64,000 bases of DNA, taken from assembly GCA_950097015.1 (NCBI GenBank), contig CATNEN010000030.1, forward strand, positions 4,278,001 to 4,342,000, read 5' to 3'. Position 1 is the stretch's first letter, and every line of letters begins with the position of its first letter. This document shows, piece by piece, positions 2,436-23,400 of this stretch. A model generated the notes under the pieces. That model was not told where the DNA came from. It did no database searches and was given only the letters and a program-made list of their open reading frames with translations. The position numbers and the translations under genes were made by a program. Source of the DNA: Macrostomum hystrix (lineage: Eukaryota > Animalia > Platyhelminthes).

Positions 2436-5400
2436 ATGTCCTCGGTCAAGGTGGCGGTTCGGGTGCGCCCGTTCAACAGTCGCGAGTTGCACAACGACGC
2501 CAAGTGTGTAATCGAGATGCACAACAACACCACGTGTGAGTGGGACCAGCCGAGTACTGGAACTTAAGCATAGCTGAATGATCTATACGTCAATGTGACT
2601 GTACTCAAATCTGAGCTCTGCTGGAAATCCGATACCAATGGGCCCAAAAGCAAACTCTCCGGCCCTCGAGCAGTCGAGGTCCCTGTGCCTTTTCCCACTC
2701 TCATTTTGGAGAGGAATGAGCGGCTCCTCATCGCTCTAGAAAGACAGTTTTCTCGTTCTCAAAAGCATGCGATAAGAAAAAATCGAGTGGGATTTTTTTC
2801 TCAACGGTTTCTGACAGCTGGGATTCTTCTGTTAGAGAGGGGGGCAGGCTGCCTCTCAGCCTGTCCAGTCCTCAGTCCCAAGCGGATGCCAACTGGGCGC
2901 TGCAGTTCCGGAAGCTGCGATGCGGAGCTTGGGCCGAGGAGAGTGGGCTAGTCGATGATGGAGTGGAGTTTGGGATAACCGTTGCTAATATTTGTCCCTT
3001 ATAGGCTGAACTAGATGTGCGATTTATGGGAAATGATGGACCCTGAGCCTTGGAGCTCGGCGTTTTTTGGCTATGGAGATGGGATGAGGACGCCTTCTAG
3101 CTGGGGCTTATAAACAGCAGTTGTCTACACTTTTTCTCGGCCGAATTGCCAATCAGTTGAGCGAAGTTTTGTTCATGTTAGCCAGTCCATGGCTTTCGCA
3201 GTCTACGCATCATTCGACCTGGACAACTCTCATTAAAGTTCGACACGCCCTGGCAGCGGATGTTTTGTCTATGGCAAAAAGTGGTGCCAGACTAGAAGAT
3301 TTTCAGATTAGACAACTTACAATCCAATTAAACCAAAGCATTAGAACTGTATCGTACATGTAGTTTAATCGTTGAACAGTTTAACAATATAAGTCATTTT
3401 CTATACACTACTTTGCGGGCTGTGAGTTGCGTAGTTTTAAAGCGTCCGAAGCTCGAATCCGCGGAGAATTCAATAAGCAGCCGCGGGGAGAAGGCTATAG
3501 GGGACTCTTTGTGCAATTCAAGCCCATGATCGGGCCAACCTTTTAAGACACAAAAAGACTGTACAATGCATAATAAGAAAGTCATGATAGCTGTAGTACT
3601 CGTACACCTGTGTGAGTGTGCCTCAGAGTCCACATCATTATTCTCAAACATCGTCCCACCCACGTGCAGATATCACCAACCCGAAGGCTGGCCCAAAGGA
3701 GCAGGCGGTCAAGAGCTTCCAATTTGATCACAGCTACTGGTCACACGAGCCGGGCGACGCAAATTTCGCCAGCCAGCGTCGCGTCTACGAGGACATCGGC
3801 GTGGAGACGCTGGAGCACGCGTTCGAGGGCTACAATGTGTGCATCTTTGCCTACGGCCAGACTGGAGCTGGCAAGAGCTACACCATGATGGGCCGGCCGT
3901 CGGAGCCCGATCAGGCCGGGATAATTCCTCAGCTCTGCGAGAACTTATTTCGTCGGCTGGGCCAGCTGACAGAGGCCGGGGCGCACAGCATTGTGGAGGT
4001 GTCCTACATGGAGATCTACTGCGAGCGAGTCCGCGACCTACTAAATCCGAAGAACAAGGCCAACCTGCGAGTGCGTGAGCACCCCCTTCTGGGTCCCTAT
4101 GTTGAGGATTTGTCCAAGTGCGCCGTGACTAACTTTGGCGACATTAACGATCTGATCGACGCTGGGAACAAGTCTAGGTTCGTTGTCTTCTGATTGACAC
4201 GTAGCAGTGTATTTGGACAATTTCTTGACGGATTTACATGACACATGACAGTACATAGTTTGCAAGCTACACAGATTAAAAACATTAAGTATTATTTAAG
4301 CTTATGGTCTCTTATATACATGGTAAATAACACGCGCCATTCGCGTGGTTCAAGGTCAACCGTAATAGAATGACTCATCGCAAGAAGACTCGTCGGGAAG
4401 AACTGTTCTGTACGCAGTTCGTCTTAACCCCCCGCAGGACCGTGGCTGCCACAAACATGAACGAGACCAGCAGCCGGTCGCACGCCGTGTTCAATATTGT
4501 CCTCACCCAGAAGCGACACGACGCTACCACAGATCTCACCGGGGAGCGGGTGAGCGTGTGGATTTTTCTGATGCATTACTTTCTTTATCCAACGGAATCT
4601 TATTTGCAATTTTACTTTTAAGAAACACTTTTGTTCACGGTTTAATAGTCTTATAGTCTTGTTCCGCATATGCTGTACTGCGAAGTACTAATATATGGGG
4701 CAAGTATACAGGTTTTAATTCACACGCGTGAGGGAATAGAAGGGTTGGAGATGAGCAGAAGCTGGCTTGATTAGCTTTTCCCCATATCAACCTCTGCCAT
4801 TCCGTCACTGACCAAGAAATGAAAATGGAAAAGAACTGGCTTGAGCTAGACTTGGGATCGAGCTAGGCGCTCTGAGAGCTCAGCACCATGGTGGCAGACA
4901 GAGCCGCAGCAGCAGCAGCTGCAGCAGCGAAGATTGCCAATCCGGCTTCTCTACATTTATCTGTGGTTTAGAAAAGGCTTTCATTACTTTCTTATAGAAG
5001 TACTTGTAGTAAAATGTAACTATAATTCAGTTCGTTTGTGATACTTAATGAAACACACTGAAGACCCAGTAGACACACCGAATACCCAGTAGACACACCG
5101 AATACCCAGTAGACACACCGAATACCCAGTAGACACACCGAATACCCAGTAGACACACCGAATACCCAGTAGACACACCGAATACCCAGTAGACACACCG
5201 AATACCCAGTAGACACACCGAATACCCAGTAGACACACCGAATACCCAGTAGACACACCGAATACCCAGTAGACACACCGAATACCCAGTAGACACACCG
5301 AATACCCAGTAGACACACTGAATACCCAGTATACACACTGAATACCCAGTAGACACACCGAATACCCAGTAGACACACTGAAGATCCAGTGGACACACTG

Positions 5401-8400
5401 AATACCCAGTAGACACACCGAATACCCAGTAGACACACCGAATACCCAGTAGACACACCGAATACCCAGTAGACACACTGAATACCCAGTATACACACTG
5501 AATACCCAGTAGACACACCGAATACCCAGTAGACACACTGAAGATCCAGTGGACACACTTAAGATCCAGTAGACACACTGAAGATCCAGTGGACACACTT
5601 AAGATCCAGTAGACACACTGAATACCCAGTAGACACACCGAATACCCAGTAGACACACCGAATACCCAGTAGACACACCGAATACCCAGTAGACACACCG
5701 AATACCCAGTAGACACACCGAATACCCAGTAGACACACCGAATACCCAGTAGACACACCGAATACCCAGTAGACACACCGAATACCCAGTAGACACACTG
5801 AATACCCAGTATACACACTGAATACCCAGTAGACACACCGAATACCCAGTAGACACACTGAAGATCCAGTGGACACACTTAAGATCCAGTAGACACACTG
5901 AAGATCCAGTGGACACACTTAAGATCCAGTAGACACACTGAATACCCAGTAGACACACCGAATACCCAGTAGACACACCGAATACCCAGTAGACACACCG
6001 AATACCCAGTAGACACACCGAATACCCAGTAGACACACCGAATACCCAGTAGACACACCGAATACCCAGTAGACACACCGAATACCCAGTAGACACACTG
6101 AATACCCAGTAGACACACTGAAGACCCAGTAGACACACTGAAGTTCCAGTGGACACACTGAAGACCGAGTAGACACACTGAAGACCCAGTAGACACACTG
6201 AATACCCAGTATACACACTGAATACCCAGTAGACACACCGAATACCCAGTAGACACACTGAAGATCCAGTGGACACACTTAAGATCCAGTAGACACACTG
6301 AAGATCCAGTGGACACACTTAAGATCCAGTAGACACACTGAATACCCAGTAGACACACCGAATACCCAGTAGACACACCGAATACCCAGTAGACACACCG
6401 AATACCCAGTAGACACACCGAATACCCAGTAGACACACCGAATACCCAGTAGACACACCGAATACCCAGTAGACACACCGAATACCCAGTAGACACACCG
6501 AATACCCAGTAGACACACTGAATACCCAGTATACACACTGAATACCCAGTAGACACACCGAATACCCAGTAGACACACTGAAGATCCAGTGGACACACTT
6601 AAGATCCAGTAGACACACTGAAGATCCAGTGGACACACTTAAGATCCAGTAGACACACTGAATACCCAGTAGACACACCGAATACCCAGTAGACACACCG
6701 AATACCCAGTAGACACACCGAATACCCAGTAGACACACCGAATACCCAGTAGACACACCGAATACCCAGTAGACACACCGAATACCCAGTAGACACACCG
6801 AATACCCAGTAGACACACTGAATACCCAGTAGACACACTGAAGACCCAGTAGACACACTGAAGTTCCAGTGGACACACTGAAGACCGAGTAGACACACTG
6901 AAGACCCAGTAGACACACTGAATACCCAGTATACACACTGAATACCCAGTAGACACACCGAATACCCAGTAGACACACTGAAGATCCAGTGGACACACTT
7001 AAGATCCAGTAGACACACTGAAGATCCAGTGGACACACTTAAGATCCAGTAGACACACTGAATACCCAGTAGACACACCGAATACCCAGTAGACACACCG
7101 AATACCCAGTAGACACACCGAATACCCAGTAGACACACCGAATACCCAGTAGACACACCGAATACCCAGTAGACACACCGAATACCCAGTAGACACACCG
7201 AATACCCAGTAGACACACCGAATACCCAGTAGACACACTGAATACCCAGTATACACACTGAATACCCAGTAGACACACCGAATACCCAGTAGACACACTG
7301 AAGATCCAGTGGACACACTTAAGATCCAGTAGACACACTGAAGATCCAGTGGACACACTTAAGATCCAGTAGACACACTGAATACCCAGTAGACACACCG
7401 AATACCCAGTAGACACACCGAATACCCAGTAGACACACCGAATACCCAGTAGACACACCGAATACCCAGTAGACACACTGAATACCCAGTAGACACACTG
7501 AAGACCCAGTAGACACACTGAAGTTCCAGTGGACACACTGAAGACCGAGTAGACACACTGAAGACCCAGTAGACACACTGAATACCCAGTATACACACTG
7601 AATACCCAGTAGACACACCGAATACCCAGTAGACACACTGAATACCCAGTAGACACACCGAATACCCAGTAGACACACTGAAGATCCAGTGGACACACTG
7701 AATACCCAGTAGACACACCGAATACCCAGTAGGCACACCGAATACCCAGTAGACACACCGAATACCCAGTAGACACACTGAATACCCAGTATACACACTG
7801 AATACCCAGTAGACACACCGAATACCCAGTAGACACACTGAAGATCCAGTGGACACACTTAAGATCCAGTAGACACACTGAAGATCCAGTGGACACACTT
7901 AAGATCCAGTAGACACACTGAATACCCAGTAGACACACCGAATACCCAGTAGACACACCGAATACCCAGTAGACACACCGAATACCCAGTAGACACACCG
8001 AATACCCAGTAGACACACCGAATACCCAGTAGACACACCGAATACCCAGTAGACACACCGAATACCCAGTAGACACACCGAATACCCAGTAGACACACTG
8101 AATACCCAGTATACACACTGAATACCCAGTAGACACACCGAATACCCAGTAGACACACCGAATACCCAGTAGACACACCGAATACCCAGTAGACACACTG
8201 AATACCCAGTAGACACACTGAAGACCCAGTAGACACACTGAAGTTCCAGTGGACACACTGAAGACCGAGTAGACACACTGAAGACCCAGTAGACACACTG
8301 AAGACCCAGTAGACACACTGAAGACCCAGTAGACACACTGAAGACCGAGTAGACACACTGAAGACCCAGTAGACACACTGAAGACCCAGTAGACACACTG

Positions 8401-11400
8401 AAGACCGAGTAGACACACTGAAAGCTTCTTGCTCTAATCCCGAACCTTTTGAAATGATTCTGATCCCTAACCTGATCCCAAAATGCGCGCGACTCATGCT
8501 CTTTGCAGGCCCTCGTTGATACCCAATCCGATTTAGTAAGTTTACATAAGCTTCGTTAAACACCTTTGTCTAGACTTTTTTCTTTAACTAAACGATATAG
8601 CTGCTACGCTTATTGAGTTTGGCAACAGCTAGAATAACTTTTGTTATTTTGCATTGCAATTAATGGCATATGGTGAGAAGTGCTACGCAAAGTGGATTAT
8701 TATAGTAACTACTACTCGTATTAATTACTAGTAACTATTACTATTTGTCGTTACTAACGACCAACACGTCTTACTGGTGCATTGTAATTATCGCATTCAT
8801 ACAATGGTGTCAAGTTTCATTGCAAACAACCTGACTTATATAACTCCCTATTGATTCTCATAACGTAACAAAGATCTACTGAGTTTTTCTAATGTTTCTA
8901 ATGCTTGGGAGTTATAGGCCGAGGAAGGTCTCTCTGTGTGTGGGAGTTTCGTATGTACAATGAGCACATACTCATGTCGGACGGAATCGGTAATAGCCCG
9001 CGGGTCAGGGCTGGACTAGGGAATAGAAATGGAGACTGTTTAGGCTTGGGATCTGGAGAGGAAGTCCAGATTGGGATAAGAAAATGCGATTTCAACCCTA
9101 TTCCGGATGGATTTAGGGCCGGCCTTGGCGTCTGGGAGATTCACCCCCCCCCGAGCAGTCCGTGATGGAGAGAGAAGGGAGTGGCAGGGTCTGGTTAGGT
9201 ACATTTGCGAGCACCCTGTGCTCAAACCGTGACTTGCTCGGACTTCCTAAAGCGGACTGCGCCACGCAAAGTCAGTGGAGAGTTGCGGGCTCGCTCACAC
9301 ACAGACACACACTCACACACACACACGGCCCTAAGGCATAAGGCAATGGGATAGGGCAATCAGTAGAAAATAATTCCAGTATCAAAGCCCCCATAAAACA
9401 AGCATTTTGAGGCTTGCATGTCAAAATCCTCTGATTTATTCAGCAAGTTTATGCAGGCGTTGCGCTTAATTGAACACCAACAGAACTCGAGTTTGATGCC
9501 TGAAAGCATGAAATTCGCTGTACTCATTCAAACTCTTGCAGTTAAACCATTCTAATCCCGAATCCTCATCCCTACCATTCTAATCCCGAATCCTCATCCC
9601 AACCATTGTAATCCCGAATCTTCATCCCTACCATTGTAATCCCGAATCTTCATCACAACCATTGTAATCCCGAATCTTCATCCCTACCATTGTAATCCCG
9701 AATCTTCATCACAACCATTGTAATCCCGAATCCTCATCCCAACCATTGTAATCCCGAATCCTCATCCCAACCATTTTAATCCCGAATCCTCATCCCAACC
9801 ATTTTAATCCCGAATCCTCATCCCTACCATTGTAATCCCGAATCCTCATCCCAACCATTGTAATCCCGAATCCTCATCCCAACCATTGTAATCCCGAATC
9901 CTCATCCCTACCATTGTAATCCCGAATCCTCATCCCAACCATTGTAATCCCGAATCCTCATCCCAACCATTGTAATCCCGAATCCTCATCCCAACCATTT
10001 TAATCCCGAATCCTCATCCCAACCATTGTAATCCCGAATCCTCATCCCAACCATTTTAATCCCGAATCCTCATCCCAACCATTGTAATCCCGAATCCTCA
10101 TCCCAACCATTGTAATCCCGAATCCTCATCCCTACCATTCTAATCCCGAATCATCATCCTATCCATTGTAATCCCGAATCCTCATCACAAAGCTTTTAAT
10201 CCCGAATCCTCATCACAACCATTGTAATCCCGAATCCTCATCCCAACCATTGTAATCCCGAATCCTCATCCCAACCATTGTAATCCCGAATCTTCATCAC
10301 AACCATTGTACTCCGAATCTTCATCACAACCATTGTAATCCCGAATCCTCATCCCAACCATTCTAATCCCGAATCCCAATCCTAACCATTGTAATCCCAA
10401 ATCCCCAAATTTTAAACTCAAATCCCAAAGTTCTTCCAGATGAAAAAAATAGAAAGATTAATATTTTAATGTCATGATCGAAATGCTACTAGTACTAACC
10501 ATTGCGCTATTTTATTTTGCATGAAAATCAAATAATTTTGCGCTTAAACTAGATTGAAGTACTTTAATAGGAGTTTTATGTACTTTTATTGTTATTAAAC
10601 ACGTGGTTTTATAAATACCAAACAAGTAATTACGGATTAAACAACCGATTTCCAACACGAATCGATCAGGTCAGCAAGATCAGTCTGGTTGATCTGGCGG
10701 GCAGCGAGAGAGCCGACTCAACCGGTGCGCAGGGCAAGCGACTCAAGGAGGGCGCCAACATCAACAAGAGTTTGACAACTCTTGGAAAAGTGATCAGCGG
10801 CCTGGCCGATATGGTGAGCATCGTGAGGCCAGTGCAACGGGGTGATATAAAAGTACATAGGCGGAAAATGCGGCAATCGAACCTTACGATTATTCCCATC
10901 TCAAAATTTCAGAGTGCGGAGGTGCGGATTCAGGAAGCGAGTTTCGATTAAAAATCCTAGTCTTTTTTAATGTTTATTTTAACAAGCAATGTTTCTACAA
11001 AAAATCTTTTCAGGCCGACCGGAAGAAGAGTAAAAAAATTGCGCAATTCATTCCTTACCGGGACTCAGTCCTCACCTGGCTGCTGCGGGAGAACCTAGGT
11101 GATCCTCCAGCTTACCTCGCCTATCCTCAGATTGTCTACTATCCCAGTGCTCACACTGTCTACTATCCCAGTTCTCACACTGTCTACTATCCCAGTTCTC
11201 ACACTGTCTACTATCCCAGTTCTCACACTGTCTACTATCCCAGTTCTCACACTGTCTACTATCCCAGTTCTCACACTGTCTACTATCCCAGTTCTCACAC
11301 TGTCTACTATCCCAGTTCTCACACTGTCTACTATCCCAGTTCTCACACTGTCTACTGTCCCAGTCCTCACACTGTCTACTATCCCAGTTCTCACACTGTC

Positions 11401-14400
11401 TACTATCCCAGTCCTCACACTGTCTACTGTCCCAGTTCTCACACTGTCTACTATCCCAGTTCTCACACTGTCTACTGTCCCAGTGCTCACACTGTCTACT
11501 ATCCCAGTCCTCACACTGTCTACTATCCCAGTCCTCACACTGTCTACTGTCCCAGTTCTCACACTGTCTACTATCCCAGTTCTTACACTGTCTACTATCC
11601 CAGTTCTCACACTGTCTACTATCCCAGTCCTCACACTGTCTACTGTCCCAGTTCTCACACTGTCTACTATCCCAGTTCTCACACTGTCTACTGTCCCAGT
11701 GCTCACACTGTCTACTATCCCAGTCCTCACACTGTCTACTATCCCAGTCCTCACACTGTCTACTATCCCAGTCCTCACACTGTCTACTGTCACAGTTCTC
11801 ACACTGTCTACTATCCCAGTCCTCACACTGTCTACTATCCCAGTCCTCACACTGTCTACTATCCCAGTCCTCACACTGTCTACTATCCCAGTTCTCACAC
11901 TGTCTACTGTCCCAGTTCTCACACTGTCTACTGTCCCAGTCCTCACACTGTCTACTATCCCAGTCCTCACACTGTCTACTATCCCAGTTCTCACACTGTC
12001 TACTGTCCCAGTGCTCACACTGTCTACTATCCCAGTCCTCACACTGTCTACTATCCCAGTCCTCACACTGTCTACTATCCCAGTCCTCACACTGTCTACT
12101 ATCCCAGTTCTCACACTGTCTACTATCCCAGTTCTCACACTGTCTACTGTCCCAGTCCTCACACTGTCTACTATCCCAGTTCTCACACTGTCTACTATCC
12201 CAGTCCTCACACTGTCTACTATCCCAGTTCTCACACTGTCTACTATCCCAGTTCTCACACTGTCTACTATCCCAGTGCTCACACTGTCTACTGTCCCAGT
12301 CCTCACACTGTCTACTATCCCAGTCCTCACACTGTCTACTATCCCAGTCCTCACACTGTCTACTATCCTAGTTCTCACACTGTCTACTATCCCAGTTCTC
12401 ACACTGTCTACTATCCCAGTTCTCACACTGTCTACTATCCCAGTTCTCACACTGTCTACTGTCCCAGTTCTCACACTGTCTACTGTCCCAGTGCTCACAC
12501 TGTCTACTATCCCAGTCCTCACACTGTCTACTATCCCAGTCCTCACACTGTCTACTGTCCCAGTTCTCACACTGTCTACTGTCCCAGTTCTCACACTGTC
12601 TACTATCCCAGTCCTCACACTGTCTACTATCCCAGTTCTCACACTGTCTACTATCCCAGTCCTCACACTGTCTACTGTCCCAGTTCTCACACTGTCTACT
12701 ATCCCAGTCCTCACACTGTCTACTGTCCCAGTGCTCACACTGTCTACTATCCCAGTTCTCACACTGTCTACTGTCCCAGTCCTCACACTGTCTACTATCC
12801 CAGTCCTCACACTGTCTACTATCCCAGTCCTCACACTGTCTACTATCCCAGTTCTCACACTGTCTACTATCCCAGTTCTCACACTGTCTACTATCCCAGT
12901 CCTCACACTGTCTACTATCCCAGTCCTCACACTGTCTACTATCCCAGTTGTCACCTCTCCGCTAACCCGCCAGGTGGCAACTCACGCACGGCCATGATCG
13001 CCGCCCTGAGTCCGGCGGACATCAACTATGACGAGACCTTGAGCACGCTTCGCTACGCCGATCGGGCCAAGCAGATCGTCTGCAAGGCCGTCATCAACGA
13101 GGACCCAAACGCCAGGCTGATCCGCGAACTCAAAGAAGAAGTTCAAAAGCTCCGCGACATTCTCCGGTTGGAGGGCATCGAACTGGCCGACGATGCGGCA
13201 GTTGCGTTGAAAGTCAGCACCACTACACAGCAGCAGCAGCAGCCGCAGCAGCAGCCGCAGCCGCAGCGTCAGAAGCGGCAGCCGTCAGTTAGCGGCGAGG
13301 ACGCCATCGAGAAGCTAAGAACCTCGGAGAAACTCATAGCCGAACTCAACGAGACCTGGGAGGAGAAGCTGAAGAAGACGGAAGAAATCCGGCAGCAGAG
13401 GTGAGGTTCGAGGATAATTATCCTCTATGATTAATCTCACTTCGATTTATTGATCACTTAGCTTGCATGCTTCTTTAGCTTTGCCAATTATCATTATCGA
13501 TAAAAAATTATATAAACTACTCTCGTTTTATCCCGAATGTTTTTGTTAGTTAGGCTGTTTTAAATCACTTTTCAATGATCAATTACATTTATTATTGTTT
13601 TAGATATGAGTATTTTCGAAGTTCAAATCTTGTTTTAGTTCAAACGAAGTTCAAACGAAAACAAAATAGATTGGAAAGTTTTTTGTAGCTCATATATATG
13701 GCCATGCACTTTTATAGCATTGTTTTTGTTATCCGGATTTCTTTATTTATTCCTGCTGATCATCCTAACATAAATAAACAGTTACTAACTTTGTATTTAA
13801 CTGTACTCAAAAGTTCATTTCTCTTGAAAAGAACTTTTGTCTTCTATAGTCCAAATGTGTCTTTAAAAGTACATTCGTCTTCAATGTACATTTGTCTTCA
13901 AAGAACTTTTTTCTTCAAAAGTACATTTGCCTTCAAAAGTACATTTGTCCTCAAAAGTACATTTGTCTTCAAAAGTACATTTGTCTTCAAAAGTACATTT
14001 GTCTTCAAAAGTACATTTGTCCTCAAAGGTACATTTGTATTCAAAGGAAATTCGTCTTCAAATGTACATTTATCTTCTTAACTGTACGATATTGATTTGC
14101 AATTAATCGACGTGTGTTTGTAAATTTTTCCTTCGTCATAGTTCAGCAATAAACTTTTTTGTTTTTTTAGAGAGCTCGAACTCAAAACCATTGGTCTGGC
14201 TTTGAGGCCTTCGTGCAGTCACGGGTAGGGCTTGTCAGCCTGCAATTGTGTTGTGCGCACAAATTTTAACTAAGTTTTCAACCTCTGTACCCCTCTCTAA
14301 AGCGTCAGACTTTTAACCAAGAGGTCTGAGGCTCGAAACTTAGTGTCGTTTTGTGTCATTGAGAATTTTCTCAATGTTTTAGTTCCAATAGGTAAATGGG

Positions 14401-17400
14401 TATAAAATCAGCATTAGCATCAGGTGGGGTAAAAATTCAGGTCGGAGTGACGGCACCAGTCCATGGACTGAACATCTGTACTCAGCCTATCGATGTGCCA
14501 CGGAATAGCTGCGACTTGGCCACTGTCTGTACACCTGAACCAACTAGATTAGGTGCTTATTTAACATTTTTGAGCCACTAGACAGGGAAGGGCTCGCATG
14601 CTTCATATAAACTCTCCATTATAATGCCCAGGTATATATGTACAGTATTTTGCACAAACCAATCGATAAAAAATTGTTTAGTTAAAATTACAAGTAGATT
14701 TAGTTCTTTAGTTCTGTATATATATTGTAGCTTTTAGTTTTAGTTTTAGTTATCATTTTTTATGTCGGATAGTTGTTAACAGTTGCCACAATGATCTTTG
14801 AATGGATCAGTTCAGTTAGTTTTGTTGAGCTACGTACAATTTTTGCTGGCTGCACTCTTTTAGTTTCCGATGCCGTGCAGCATTCTATATGAAGTATCTG
14901 AGGGTTTTAGTGGTCTCAGAAGATGCCTTGTTAGATGTCATCTTCTATTTGGACCCTAATGTTTATGTTCTCTTTGTAGCAGCTGATACGAAAAATGTAA
15001 AGTCGCGCGAAAAAATGGTATCATTTAACAAAAAAACTTTTATTGTTAAAACTCACTAAATAAGGCACCGATTTGAATCGCAGGGAGCACCAGCTTGCCG
15101 AGATGGGCCTCGCGTTGAGAAACGACGGCGGCGCTCTGGGCGTGTTCTCGCCGAAGCGGACGCCGCATCTGGTCAACCTGAACGAAGATCCCCTGATGTC
15201 CGAGTGCCTTATCTACTACCTCAAGGAGGGCGAGACCAAGTGAGCCCTGGGACTCAGAATGCGCAGAGCTATTGGGTCACTATGGAATATGGATTGATGA
15301 ACACAAGGAGCCTGTAGTGACTGTGGTCGGTTTGGGATCCCCGGCCCACAGTAGTTATAATAAGAATATCACAGAAGCAGGCGTAAGGACGCTCTGCTTA
15401 AGCCTGGCACTGGTGTCGTTAGGATGCTCACACAGTACTTCTAAGTAGATACAGTACCCTGTACAGGCTTGGCACTCTGAAAGGAAAGACACGAATGCAG
15501 CGCTTACAGATCGAATCTTTAAGTTCGCAGGAGCGAGCGCGGTTGCCCGGGCAGTTATTGACAAACAAATAGGGCAGTAGGGGGCAGACAGGGGAGACAG
15601 TGCACAAACAAAGTCAAGCCACCAGCGCGCAGGGAGGGGTAGGGTTGTACGCGCTGGGTGGGCGGGCAAAGCTACGCAGAGCTGATTGGCGGGAGGGGCA
15701 AAGCCACGCAGGGCTGGAGTAAGGGTTGGCAGACAATGCCCGCGCCCAGCCAGATGGCGGCCAAGGACACCCTGAGCAGAGACGTGGGAGAAGGCCGTAG
15801 CAGCGTTATCGATGTGTCATCGATCTCTCATTCTTGTATACGGAAAGAAAGTGTTTTGTCTCGCAGGGTCGGGCGTCCCGAGTCGCTGGTGGCTCAAGAT
15901 GTGCACCTGTGCGGCGAGTACATTCTGGCTCAGCACTGCGTGTTTGAACTGCGAAACGGTAATGCTCGACTAATGCAACTATTCTTGTTTGGAATTGAGA
16001 CCTACGGATAATTTGATCTGCTAAAATATTCAGATTAAAAAACTTGAGATTTTAGCACCTGGCACTTCAGATAATTTGAACAAATTTAATTGTCCACAAT
16101 TCAGAACTTCAAAGAAAATTATTATAATGCAACGAAAAAGAGAAGAGAGAGGAACATTATTTTAAAGAAGTAATTATATTAGACAAAAAACGCAGTTTCT
16201 AAGATTTGTGGCTTCTTAGACTTTGGATTTCATGGAATCGGTATATTTAAATTCCAGATTTCCAAGAATCAAGATAATTCTTGGAGGCCGGAATTTAAAA
16301 AGTTTAAGATAATTCAGAATTTCGAATGTCCAAGAATTAGAGAAAATCTCCTGCGACTTCTAAACAGTGAGAGAAAATCCAAAAGTTAGGATTTTCAAGA
16401 CCTCTTATTATTGAAAAAGTACAAATTAAAAAAATCTGGAATCCTGTTTTAAAAGCTCCTCACTAAGTACGGTTGTACTTTGCTCTGATTTCAATTTTTT
16501 CTGCCCACTGCGCAGACACGGTCACACTCACCCCCGTTGGCAACGCCGAATGCTACGTCAACGGCAAGCGAATCTCGCAGTCGACGCCATTGAAGACCGG
16601 CTCGCGGGTCATTCTAGGCAAGAGCCACGTGTTCCGCTTCACCAACCCGCAGCAGGCGAGGGAGCAGAAGGCCGAGACCCCATCCGGTGAGTGAGGGATG
16701 TGGATGGATTGCTAGTCTAGCCTCATGGATAAAGAAATAGAATGGATTGCTAGCCTAGCCTCATGGATAAAGAAATGGAATAGATTGCTAGCCTAGCCTC
16801 ATGGATGACGGAATTGCTAGTTGAGTCCATGGATCGAGGAATAAGTTCCTAGTTGAGCACGCGGTCGAGTCAGTGGACAATGACCTGGCTGTCAGCATTA
16901 GTCTTAGGCCAGGCTCCCAGACAATTGCTCTGAGCATCTCTAAACTCTCCCTCGAAGCCGATCCAGTGGACTGGCAGTACGCCATGGCGGAGCTGCTGGA
17001 GAAGCAGGGCGTCGACCTGCGCATGGAGATGGAGGTGCGCCTCATGCGGCTGGAAGAGCAGTACAAGCGCGAGAAGGAGGAAGCTGACAGAGAGTTCGAG
17101 AAGCAGCGAAAGGTAAAATTTCACTGATAATCAATCAATATTGATTTGCAATTGCACTTAACAACCGATTTCATATTGCAGGGTTACGAGGCCACAATCC
17201 AGTCCCTGCAGGAGCAGGTGACCATGAGTCAGAGCATGATGAGCTCCATCATCAGTTCCAGCTGCCTCATTGACGACGCTGAGGCTGTTGAGGCCGAAGA
17301 GAAATGTATTAGAAATATAATATTTTTAATGAGAAAATTCTGATTTTTTACTGAATGAAATAATATTGTAGCGTTCGACATTTCAGCGAAATGGAGCCAG

Positions 17401-20400
17401 CGTGAGTTCAAACTGGCTGCAAGAGCATTTGCGAAGTGGAAGGAGCATCACTACACATCTCTGAGGGTGGGTGGACATTGAAACTTGAACTAGATGGCTC
17501 AAGAATTTTTATATATTGGCTGCTCAATGTAGTAAAAAGTCTTCTGTGTTTTTGTGTTATTGTCTATTTATTGTGCTGTCATTAAAGTATAGTTGTCAAT
17601 TGCAACCGGTTAAGATAACAAAAAATAAGGCTTTTTGTTCTAAAGAATTCTATTTTTATCCCTATCCAGGATGATCTATGGACCAATGCCGTTCTCCTGA
17701 AGGAAGCTAACGCCATCAGCGTTGAGCTCAACAAAAAGGTGAGCTCAATTTCATGATGCTGCTTCACGAATAGTAACCGGTAATTGCAGTGACTAACTGG
17801 GTGTTAAATCATGTAGAATTAACATGACATTGCGACCACATTAGATTATCACGTACAATTACGTTATAGGTTATTAACTAGCAAAAGAGAACTCGGTATT
17901 TCCGCTTGGCTAAACCTTCAACAGCCAAGCGATTCTACTTAGGCAAACTTGTTGTTCTTAGGCTCTACTTAGGCTCACTCGCATAAGTGTTGCCCAATCC
18001 ACTACCTAAACTGCAGGTGCAATTCCAGTTTGTATTGCTGACTGACACTGCTTACACTCCACTGGGCCCGGAACTGCTGCCAGTGACAGCAGCCGGACAG
18101 TCGAACTCCGCTGCTCGCCGATTTCCTCGCACCGTGCTGGCAGTCGAGGTGCAGGACTTAAAGAACGGTGCGGTGCACTATTGGAGCTTGGAGAAATTCA
18201 AGTGAGTCTAGATTCACTGCCGCACCGAATATCTTCTGGTGTGTTGTAACACAGCTAAGCTACTTCTAGTACATAGCCTAGTCTGTGATCACTTCAAGCG
18301 TGTACACTATCTTTTATTATTTGTAATCTTTCGCCCTGACTGTTTGTTTAATAAGTACTAAATGTACTTTTAATTCTATCAAACTCAGTCTCAGTTTGGC
18401 TTTTCTCAGTTACGAGAGTAAAGGGTAAAAGAGCGGGAGAAAATCTCGTTTGAATATTGTTAACAACTCAAGGAGCACAAGATATCCCATAACTGACTGC
18501 TTCACCAGGCTTACCATTTCACCTAGCAACTTTTTGCCTATGATTTAGATTTGAGGTACAGTGCTTCGACCTGTTAAAATCGCTAAAGTTTCCTACCCTT
18601 GACCCTAAAACACTGTCAATCCCTCCCCACCACCCCCTGTTTACTCCGCACCGACCAATCAGAGATCGACTGGACTCCATGAACAGCTTCCTTCAGCAGG
18701 CTGATGGCATCGGCAGTGGTGGCAGCTCCGGTGGTGGCGGCGGCGCCAAGGAGCCATATTTCGACTTTCAGCAGTCGGCAAGGTGGGGCTCGCTACCCGC
18801 ATTAAGAGCCCCTTTGGACCCCAACCCAATGTCCGAATGCAGCCCAGCTTTGTTTGTTTACTTTCTGATTGTTCAGTGTAGTCTGGTCTGTCTTGTAGCG
18901 CCCCTGTTTCTCTACTGCTACTACTAGTAGAGTATCGTGCACAAGTTAGCTTCTTGGATACCAAATACTCGAGAGAAATTTGAGCTTTTTGGTCTCGTAA
19001 TTAACAGACAACAGCTTACCCAAGAATTCGATCAAGCAGGTTTAGACTTAAATGTGTAAGAATTAATGGCTTTCATGCGTTTGGCTGCATGATAATGATC
19101 TGTCATGTGTTAGACAGTTATTAATAGTTAAAAAACTGATCAATACTGGAAGACCTTTTAATTCCGTTAGATATTGAAATTCTAGTGAAATTGTGTCGTA
19201 ACGAAAACAGCGTAACGTTAAGAATTCGCATTCCACTGTCATAGCATATCTTTCGTTTTGTCCTTTGCTGTTTGCCAGATTATAGTTTTTCAATCAGCCA
19301 TAAATTTTATTTATTTATTCTACTTTGGCTTTGGTCAATCAAATATTGTGTTGCCAGAAAGATGTCGTATTGAATTCAGTGTATTGTCACTGAAAGAAGT
19401 CACATTATTATAACTTATGCACCTCCTGTTATGGATCAGTTCGGATATTTCTACTGCTATCGTTGGTGATTGTGTGCATTTTCTTTTACAATGAGTTTTC
19501 GTAAAGACACAAGCAATATTAAATTTTTGTCTAAACGTATGTGTCATTAAGTATAGCATAGAGTTAGCACATGGATGAATAATATAACTCATATAACTCA
19601 TAATATAACTCATGGATGAATATTATATTATTCATCCATGAGTTAGCATATCATTAAGTTACAGCATATTCGTCAATGAATATACTACCTTGCACGAATG
19701 AGGGTTTATGAAAGTATTGATAGTATAGTATATTGTAAAACGATGTTCGATTCCTGAGTCTCGACCATAGACTATGCATTAAAAGTGTGCATTAAACGTC
19801 CCGCGGTTTCTAATTGGCTAAAAAACCATTTAATGCACAGTTTTTTCGTCTAATGCACGCTTTTTGACATTACAATCGTTTTACAAGTGACATGAAACAG
19901 CAGAATGTTTGTTATTAAACCTCGTAGTTGTTCTCACTGCGGTTGGTAAAATACCAACTACTTCAGTTAAAGCCAACTGTTTAAAAAAATCATTACAAAT
20001 ATATTTATTTAGCGTTTCCTCTGCTTTGCTTACGTATCCTTAAAAAGGCAGATTAATTGCAAAGAGCATTCCTTATCTAACCTATCGATTGAAAATGATT
20101 TTCCTTCGCAGGCAACGCCTCGAACTGATCCGAGAGATGTACAAGAATGAGGCCGAGCATTCGCCCACCTCGCCAGACGCGATGCACGATTCCACTGCCG
20201 GAGGGCACGACCCGTTTTACGACAGGTTCCCCTGGTTTCGCCTGATTGGACGGTGAGCTGATTGGCGGAAGGCTGTTCCGACAATATCTAGAACCGTATC
20301 AGGATCCGTAGCTAGAACCGTATCAGGATCCGTAGCTAGAACCGTATCAGGATCCGTAGCTAGAACCATATCAGGATCCGTAGCTAGAACCATATCAGGA

Positions 20401-23400
20401 TCCGTAGCTAGAACCATATCAGGATCCGTAGCTAGAACCGTATCATGATCCGTAGCTAGAACCGTATCATGATCCGTAGCTAGAACCGTATCATGATCCG
20501 TAGCTAGAACCGTATCATGATCCGTAGCTAGAACCGAATCACGCGCCTCATTTCGAATACGTAGGCGTAAAAATAAAGTGACATGTGGATAAGCGTACAA
20601 ATTCCAAAATAACTTTACATGTGCACATTATTCGAGAAATGACTAACATTATTTCATGAAGCATTTCCTTGTAAGAAATCTATATTGCCTGCCATACCTG
20701 TCCCTCAAACAAACAGCGCATTCGTGCACCTGACGAACCTGTACTACAATGTCCCACTGGTGCACCAAGCGGCTGTTGTCAACAAAAAAGGCGCCGTGAA
20801 AGGCTTCCTACGAGTCGAAGTCCAACTGCTGGGCGACGAGTCGGAAGACCCGCCCGCCGAGGGTGTCCGTCAGTCCGGCCGCGCTCGGCTACTGTTCGAT
20901 GATCGCGACTACTTTGGCAAGAAGGCGGCCACGGTACGGCGAAGTCCGACAGTTTCATCGCTGCCTGGCTGCGGCAGTGGCGGCGGTTGCGGTGGCAGTG
21001 GTGGCACCGGAAAAGCCGGAAGCGGCGTCTGCGTCTGCGGCCCAAGCGAGGAGGACAACCTCTGTAGGATTGTCGAAGGCTGTCGGGCTGACTCGGACAA
21101 AGAGCCAAACGCTCTGCCAACGCTGGTCTACCAGGAAATTGACAAGCGGCTGGGATTCATCCCGGCCAGCTTGCCAACCCACCTGGCCCTCGGTCGCACG
21201 GTCAACTTTCGCGTTACAGTCTTGCATGCTTCCGGCGTTAGCAACGAGTATGCCGACGTCTTCTGCCAGTACAACTTCCTGCACCGCGTTGAAGAGGCTT
21301 TCAGCACTGAGCCAGCAAAGAACGGCTGCGCCAAAGAATCTGGTCTTGTGAATTTTCATCATGAACAAAACTTCACAACGGTCGTCACGAGGGCGTTTGT
21401 CGACTACCTGCGGAACCACCCGCTCGTGTTCGAGCTTTACGGTCACAGAACTCCGGAGATCCGTCAGCTGAGTGCATCCGACTCCACAGCCGGCCTGGCT
21501 GCTGCCGTGGGTCGCTCGCCGAGTCGCCGAATCTTTCCACCGACTCAGCCGGCGTCCGCACCTGTGCCACCACCGCGTCAGGGTGGTCCGGCGGCTGCCA
21601 TGGTAACTTCGCTGGTTTCACTCGTTGGCGGGCCGATCCAGGCTCGGTTCGATCTGCTGGTGAGCTTTGAAATTCTCGAACTCGCGCCAACTGGCGAGTA
21701 CATCCCCGTGGTGGTCGATCATCCCGACGATTCACCATGCCAAGGCGTCTTCCTGCTCCATCATGGCCTTCAACGTCGCTTAGCCATCAGCATTGTGCAC
21801 GAGGCTGTCCCCGAGCGCCTGTTTAACGAGGTGCGCGAAGTCGTTGTCGGTCGCGTTCGCGACACACCCGAATTCCTTGATGCCGAGTCGTTCTCCAAGG
21901 TGCTGTCGCTGACGCTGCAGCCGGCGCATTATTCAGCACAGAACGGAGACGATCGAGTCTTCTTCCGATTTGAAGCAGCCTGGGACAGTTCGATGCACGA
22001 GAGCGCCCTGTTGAATACGGTAACGCCGTCCAATGAGAAGGTCTTCATGACCGTATCCTGCTACCTGGAGGTCGAGGGCTGCCTACAACCGATTTGCATT
22101 ACTAAGGACATCACCCTGATGATTTATCCCAGGGACACGAAGCTTTCGGTGCCCAGGTAAGTTTTTTTCGTTGTCTTAGCCTTGCTTTATTGTATTTTTT
22201 GTTGTTTCTCCGCTTTGTGATCGCCATGCTTTTCTTAACTAATAAAGTGATGTAGCTACAGCCACTAACGCTTTGATATATTCGTAGTATTTACGCTCGT
22301 ACGTAGCAGGCTACAACTGTTCGAAGCCTATCGAAAAGTTTTCAGACAAAAAATTTCATACTGAATAGCTAAAAATTTAGGCATGACTTGAATGTCAAGA
22401 AAGGGTATACCCGTAATAAAATTCCCTAAAACGGATAAATCAGTAGTCAGTATCAGTAGCTGCCTCGAATTCATCGAAAGTCAAGCCCGTCGAGGGTTAA
22501 TAATATAATAAAAATAATTGCAGGAGGGCTGCGGGCAATTTACATCATTTTCTGGCTGTAGACCCGAAGCCATCGAGGAGGCAATCCTGCTCATCTCGCT
22601 TACTCCTGAGCACACACGCACACAGATACCGTACGCAGGCACCCGCTCACACAGGTGTGTACATCTGCCCTGACTTTCCCATCGTCAGACAGTGTACAAT
22701 CTCAATGTGCCTTGAATAAATCTGGCATCGCCGCGGAATCGAGCTCAGGGACCTTGGCGCAAATCGAGCCTTGGGAGGCAAACGTCTTAACCGCTCTGCC
22801 ACTGATCCCGCTGCCGTCGAAGGTTAACTCCCTAGTGGTATAGAAGAAGAACGTCTGACATTGTTGCAGTTTTCTCCGTAGCTACGGTTTTTATTAGACA
22901 TATTGAAATGAAATTCCTCGAATCAGATGAGCTTAGATAAACTTAGATAAACGAGCTTGCATGCGTGTCTTGCTGTGCAAGCTTGCATTAGCACTAAAAT
23001 GTATAATGGCTTGAGAAAGTATCACTAATAGCAGTCTATCAATTTTAAATCGCTGGCTTCTTGCTTTGCAGCATCACTCAAAACGTGTCCCTGTAAGTAT
23101 GTCGGTTGCTGCTGTCGCTTATTCTATTGATAATGCGAGTTCTCCTTTGTAATGCATGGTACACCTTCAGCGTTTCGCAGCTTCATGGCGACGATTGTTT
23201 CTTATGCTACACAAACATTTTCACTACGCGTGCACAATGGTTTTTAAGAGGAATTCGCCTGCTCTTCACCTCGAGCACCAACGCAACAGTATGAGCTAGA
23301 ATATTAACTGGGACATATAGGACTCAACTTAGCACTGCTGTTCAACTCAAATGCTAGATAGAACAAAGCATTTTTAGCAAACCTACCTACTATGCAGGTA

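Follow-up and report, generated by a model that had tools for sequence, protein, structure and literature searches.

The question raised by this locus is whether a kinesin-3 gene of the platyhelminth Macrostomum hystrix carries an additional exon that its dominant mRNA leaves out. The stretch analysed, hereafter the window, comprises 64,000 nucleotides (nt) of contig CATNEN010000030.1 (assembly GCA_950097015.1, positions 4,278,001 to 4,342,000 of the forward strand), and an unc-104/KIF1A-type kinesin-3 gene extends along its plus strand between about 2.4 and 25.5 kb. In one intron of this gene, a first-pass annotation made from the sequence had proposed a stalk exon at 18663-18782, duplicated from the exon at 20112-20252, possibly mutually exclusive with it, and potentially read through into a membrane anchor. 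We consider it about an even chance (roughly 0.5) that 18663-18782 is a genuine minor or tissue-restricted alternative cassette exon of the unc-104/KIF1A orthologue. The segment has the anatomy of an exon and coding-like statistics, is equivalent in position and phase to an annotated cassette exon of other invertebrates, and is skipped in the dominant mRNA. Its use in any transcript, its behaviour as a cassette and any effect on motor regulation are inferred.

The candidate exon lies inside a 1910-nt intron bounded by two RNA-confirmed exons, 18015-18201 and 20112-20252, 461 nt after the former and 1329 nt before the latter (coordinates are those of the window, and features lie on the plus strand unless stated otherwise). 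It is 120 nt long and would encode 39 residues between a split lysine and a split arginine codon, with a short RL..M start that echoes the constitutive exon, followed by a glycine-rich middle. Its splice sites are ordinary for the host gene. The acceptor, ...ccgaccaatcag|A at 18662/18663, closes a C-rich pyrimidine tract ending in CAG (18600-18662), where an island rich in guanine and cytosine (GC) begins, and its pyrimidine fraction of 0.65 falls inside the 0.55-0.85 range of the validated acceptors of the gene. The donor, AAG|gtgggg at 18782/18783, resembles the validated donor AGG|gtgggt at 17467. Like exon 20112-20252, the candidate opens on the final base of one split codon and closes with the first two bases of the next, and the reading frame is kept whether it is inserted as a cassette or joined directly to the exon at 20717. 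A 126-codon open frame occupies the one phase-compatible frame of the intron. When the sequence was re-read, the coordinates, the AG and GT dinucleotides, the 2-2 phases and the translations were all found to be as first annotated.

The composition of the candidate sets it apart from the DNA around it, its GC fraction being 0.60, compared with 0.56-0.60 in the flanking coding exons and 0.354 in the remainder of the intron. The GC-rich island is single-copy within the window and reaches about 60 nt past each proposed splice site. Coding potential was assessed with a codon log-odds score trained on 1484 codons of the host gene against its introns. The proposed frame of the candidate reaches 0.54 per codon and the two remaining frames 0.19 and 0.00; the first of these values lies among those of coding windows of the same length (0.50±0.14) and above all 54 stop-free intron windows (mean -0.44, maximum 0.38). 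This score is the six-frame maximum over the whole intron. It drops to 0.06 in the open frame before the acceptor and to -0.01 beyond the donor, so that its edges coincide with the AG and GT sites.

The host gene is a kinesin-3 of the unc-104/KIF1A type. Full-length insect unc-104 proteins align with it collinearly over 2436-25488 at about 54% identity (tblastn), and the motor, FHA, KIF1B, DUF3694 and PH regions follow one another in the order of a kinesin-3 unc-104/KIF1A orthologue; homologues of its largest exon bear DUF3694, KIF1B and PH domains (Pfam). The exon that precedes the intron of interest (18015-18201) encodes the end of the linker from the FHA domain to the stalk, followed by the AA of the split lysine codon; it matches residues 768-830 of insect unc-104 by tblastn and ends in the donor CAA|gtgagt. 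The constitutive exon that follows the intron (20112-20252, 141 nt) carries an 11-residue motif that is near-invariant in KIF1 proteins and was kept, with minor variants, in the 62 relatives inspected. The next constitutive exon (20717-22158), found in the RNA contigs, encodes the DUF3694 region, and its homologues carry PF12473. The gene is also unusually divergent. Its DUF3694 exon, the largest, is about 45% identical to those of insects, molluscs and vertebrates alike, and the gene is roughly equidistant (45-57% identity) from insect, mollusc, tick and vertebrate KIF1 proteins. A word-index protein search with the 480 residues of the downstream exon returned no close relatives in its length range. 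Insertions rich in glycine, alanine and proline are present in the gene over 2436-25488.

A precedent for an extra exon at this very junction is provided by other invertebrates. The unc-104 proteins of Timema, Papilio and Brenthis, as well as a gene model of the snail Candidula, contain 45-72 additional residues between ...HYWTLEKL(R) and QRLELMREMY..., and a version from the beetle Callosobruchus was also recovered. A search restricted to this region retrieved at least 120 further annotated proteins with an exon of 45-46 residues in Orthoptera, Isoptera, Phasmatodea and many Hymenoptera. The family is 78-88% identical across insect orders over the searched 77-residue region, with the consensus xRLELMRHIYNED.SP.TPEAKED.FQCL....N.KFSLANLLPS, and the first half of the exon is a paralogue of the constitutive one (z 6.8 when compared with that of the window itself). 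In the case of Bombus pyrosoma, it corresponds to a discrete 138-nt exon with AG and GT ends and the same 2/1 phase (positions 11580-11717 of the Bombus locus, L001); about 480 nt of intron precede it, and about 1.1 kb separate it from the constitutive exon downstream. The RNA-defined flanks of the flatworm candidate, 18015-18201 and 20112-20252, match this layout. RefSeq isoforms with and without the cassette exon coexist in Schistocerca gregaria and in Neodiprion species, and in the isoforms inspected the cassette never replaces the constitutive exon, which is always kept. Full-text paper searches found no description of this 138-nt unc-104 cassette exon, though it is annotated in RefSeq isoforms. 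The first-pass annotation was therefore right about the kind of element that occupies this slot, namely an alternative exon half-duplicated from the constitutive one in the same intron and phase, while homology of the candidate itself to the insect and snail family could not be demonstrated.

Several observations weigh against the candidate being an exon, and they also form the case for a different reading, in which the GC-rich island is a pseudo-exon or a relic, possibly a decayed ancestral cassette combined with a GGN microsatellite, that is never spliced in or is spliced in only as noise. The first set of observations comes from RNA. The sample consisted of the four public runs that contain the locus, all from one study and available as assembled contigs of unrecorded library type; the contigs of all four are spliced, and they can therefore be treated as effectively derived from RNA. 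They define the exon chain 16546-16685, 16957-17110, 17180-17305, 17387-17465, approximately 17669-17736, 18015-18201, 20112-20252 and 20717-22158, in which exon 18015-18201 lies in spliced contigs and exon 20112-20252 is joined to both 18201 and 20717 in every run. In each run, one contig joins 18201 directly to 20112 across a GT..AG intron, with 140 nt on the shorter side of the junction, and leaves the candidate uncovered; depth is zero over 18273-19651 on either strand. None of the contigs includes the candidate together with the constitutive exon, as some insect transcripts do, and the three junctions by which the earlier proposal could be checked, 18201>18663, 18782>20112 and 18782>20717, are missing from these contigs, from which minor isoforms could escape. 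Since all four runs join 18201 to 20112 at zero depth over the candidate, the dominant mRNA skips it, and skipping is what prevails in the available RNA. Contig depth is only about 4-9 and assemblies lose rare variants, so that zero cover is weak evidence against a minor or cell-type-restricted isoform.

The second set concerns homology. The similarity of the candidate to its own constitutive exon, on which the idea of a duplication was partly based, is weak. A collinear global alignment, computed without the shared terminal K and R, gives a z of 3.5, a value that 3 of 2000 shuffles and none of 162 intronic 39-mers attain; local and semi-global alignments are not significant. In a scan of 1778 six-frame segments (hmmsearch, E<=10), a 16-sequence profile of the insect and snail cassette exon did not match the candidate; in the window it matches only the constitutive exon, at 20113-20250 (E 1.4e-4). 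Pairwise global z values against the cassette family do not exceed 2.4 for the 39-residue candidate or 2.8 for a 55-residue extension. The only residues common to the candidate and the family are RL..M and AKE, and the signature RLELMR.IYNE ... FQCL ... FSLANLLPS is not found in the candidate. Comparison of the candidate with the Bombus locus by tblastn gave noise. The candidate peptide is absent from 1.84 billion protein cluster representatives (phmmer, with the 87 residues of exon plus tail as query), a negative result that is weak in itself, as cluster representatives often hide alternative isoforms. Two phmmer matches to the same query are repeat proteins and were judged spurious on pairwise checks, searches of PDB sequences with three exon peptides gave linker-like noise only, and two metagenome scans, one of proteins and one with a degenerate DNA pattern, gave no match. 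Position and phase agree with membership of the insect and snail family; the residues do not reveal it. Because the host gene is so divergent (about 45% in its big exon), an exon of 45 residues could have drifted beyond detection, and a homologous cassette exon may have done so here. An alternative in-phase donor at 18831 (AAT|gtccga), which would lengthen the exon to 168 nt and align GSLPALRAP loosely with FSLANLLPS, was judged weaker, being a poor donor with a codon score of 0.12.

The third set concerns the sequence context. In-frame AG..GT candidates measuring 45 nt or more abound in the intron (n=73), many of them nested in the single 126-codon open frame. The (GGN)n run inflates both the GC content and the codon signal, and the antisense frame of the candidate reaches a score of 0.58, almost equal to that of the sense frame. 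Taken with the lack of RNA cover and of detectable homology to an exon so strongly conserved among insect orders, these features make a pseudo-exon or relic quite possible, though it is not the reading we favour. Against it, the coding-like score is specific to one frame and survives removal of the G-rich run, at 0.34 against a 5th percentile of 0.26 for coding windows; its edges fall on the AG and GT sites; the long open frame is in the one frame whose phase is compatible with splicing; and contig assemblies drop rare isoforms, which makes absence of cover a weak argument.

The antisense signal also invites the view that the island belongs to some other intronic element, which might act in regulation or form part of a nested or antisense transcript. 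This view finds support in a minus-strand open frame of 101 codons (18659-18964), in the antisense codon score and in the extension of the island about 60 nt beyond each splice site. Yet a score of 0.58 is what GGC/GCC symmetry predicts, no RNA covers the island on either strand, and no Rfam match was found in it at a permissive E-value threshold, weak matches being confined to 19562-19671. The GC-rich flanks equally fit splicing-regulatory sequence around an alternative exon. Such an element appears improbable. The intron also contains, at 19562-19646, a hairpin or inverted repeat that is nearly perfect, with a minimum free energy of -30 kcal/mol and a z of -5.45 against shuffles. The weak Rfam matches fall there; they are to microRNA families and sub-threshold, the best with 25 bits against a gathering score of 61. 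The hairpin may be a small inverted-repeat element.

The first-pass annotation had suggested a possibly mutually exclusive pair, in which the candidate would replace exon 20112-20252 through the junction 18782>20717 and produce a stalk variant devoid of the conserved 11-residue motif. The two exons do share the same phase, a similar length (120 against 141 nt) and the weak collinear similarity described above, and the junction to 20717 would be in frame. However, the paralogous upstream exon always occurs together with the constitutive exon in the relatives inspected and never alone, and DPFY(D/E)R...(V/I)GR is kept directly before (A/S)F(V/I)YLSNL in the intact relatives inspected. Even the vertebrate isoforms that carry an insertion end it with a second copy of DPFY(D/E)R...(V/I)GR, in place of which the candidate offers only a 10-residue stretch. 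The RNA contigs contain no 18782>20717 junction and instead join 18201 to 20112. Mutually exclusive use is therefore very unlikely.

The remaining proposal was that of a tail-anchored kinesin-3, in which the GTGGGG donor would be skipped, perhaps in a rare cell type, and the mRNA would end soon after 18927, giving a truncated motor with a C-terminal membrane anchor. The open frame on which it was built exists. Reading past the donor adds 48 codons up to a stop at 18925-18927 (18783-18927), the first 60 nt or so being GC-rich and the rest a T-rich tract. Strong hydrophobicity marks the last 25 or so residues, whose best Kyte-Doolittle mean over 19 residues (KD19) is 2.39, five residues before the stop. 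This hydrophobic segment is single and lies at the extreme C-terminus, as a tail anchor would; among the stop-free segments of the window only 14 of 1951 reach its KD19 value, and none of 81 do so in the introns of the gene. Nevertheless, the tail DNA is 44% T and 11% A, 49% of 20,000 shuffles of it are stop-free, and among these 40% reach the usual transmembrane threshold of KD19>=1.6 and 3.6% reach the observed value. The residues of the tail, F, L, V, C, Y and S, are those encoded by T-rich DNA. The hydrophobicity is thus largely predicted by base composition, in keeping with the caution already expressed with the proposal, that T-rich non-coding DNA can translate as hydrophobic by chance. 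Codon log-odds are non-coding (-0.01 over the read-through, -0.09 over its hydrophobic part), no related protein was found among the cluster representatives, and the four runs show neither RNA cover of the tail nor a 3' end signal, although rare transcripts could escape assembled contigs. No AATAAA occurs within 590 nt after the tail, the only hexamer being ATTAAA at 19518. The open frame beyond the donor, including its hydrophobic tail, is best read as intron and not as a coding C-terminus, and a membrane-anchored isoform, which would moreover depend on the use of an upstream exon that is itself a candidate, is unsupported and deserves hardly any credence.

We return to the cassette exon as the preferred reading. 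The candidate would fill the alternative-exon slot between the FHA-linker exon and the stalk-opening exon (QRLEL(I/M)REMY...). Its inclusion beside the constitutive exon would add a 40-residue insert made of the RL..M start, a glycine-rich and probably flexible middle and a 10-residue end, and this insert would fall between the FHA domain and the coiled-coil region that comes after it. The coiled-coil region after the FHA domain takes part in the autoinhibition and dimerisation of kinesin-3 motors. Should the exon prove to be in use, a fast-evolving lineage would have retained the slot between FHA domain and stalk while exchanging nearly all of its sequence, which would suggest that selection maintains the length or flexibility of the linker rather than a specific motif. 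The exon, if real, would be a divergent addition to a kind of exon that is annotated in databases. In practical terms, 18663-18782 is a candidate exon for genome annotation to check, and functional studies could reasonably be aimed at the insect and snail cassette, since autoinhibition is governed by the part of kinesin-3 in which it lies.

Repeats are a further feature of the introns of this gene. Two large satellite-like tandem arrays (4992-8563 and 11095-12997) lie within introns of the part encoding the motor domain and generate spurious open frames of great length on either strand. Inside an intron, at 16697-16893, lies a short repeated unit (GGATTGCTAGCCTAGCCTCATGGATAAAGAAAT...) to which many RNA contigs align at 90-95% identity. 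Their summed depth exceeds 100, and the unit appears to represent a repeat family that is dispersed and transcribed. A 24-bp tandem repeat (10.6 copies, 98% matches) at 20288-20541 fills much of the intron after exon 20112-20252. RNA contigs of some runs show raised depth on it, which suggests that copies of this repeat exist elsewhere in the genome.

Comparison with known kinesin-3 systems helps to place the candidate. The KIF1B alpha and beta isoforms are an example of alternative tails that switch cargo; these tails are long, conserved and expressed domains, and the beta tail has a PH domain. They resemble the proposed tail in that alternative splicing alters the non-motor part of a kinesin-3, and they differ from it in that the 48-residue read-through has neither RNA cover nor a coding signal. 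In C. elegans, unc-104 contains a neuron-specific microexon of 7 residues, used in the AVM and PVM neurons (PMC12084633). This microexon is located in the motor domain, whereas the candidate would be a stalk exon, but it provides a precedent for unannotated, cell-type-restricted exons that bulk RNA would miss.

Another parallel is found in vertebrate KIF1A and KIF1B. Here the constitutive exon is optionally followed by an acidic insertion whose end is a second DPFYDRSPWF..VGR motif. The second copy of the motif preserves the junction to FVYLSNLLYPVPL and mirrors the invertebrate arrangement. As the candidate would be, this insertion (...PWF(R/K)LVG-SSPIF...) is an optional element of the same linker that repeats a motif of the constitutive exon. 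Unlike the candidate, it is placed downstream of the constitutive exon, is about 75-100 residues long and acidic, and duplicates the C-terminal rather than the N-terminal motif.

Among the closest known counterparts is the insect and snail cassette, exemplified by the Schistocerca gregaria isoforms X6 (XP_049853671.1), which contains it, and X15 (XP_049853681.1), which does not, and also present in Neodiprion, Bombus, ants, Zootermopsis, Timema, a beetle, Lepidoptera and the snail Candidula. This cassette is optional, as the candidate would be in M. hystrix. The candidate is 18 nt shorter and differs in its glycine-rich middle and in lacking FQCL and FSLANLLPS. The two nevertheless occupy the same intron, between ...HYWxLEK(L/F)(R/K) and QRLEL(M/I)REMY, and lie in its 5' part; they share the split-codon phase at either end, their lengths are multiples of three (120 and 138 nt), and both begin with an RL..M sequence that echoes the constitutive exon.

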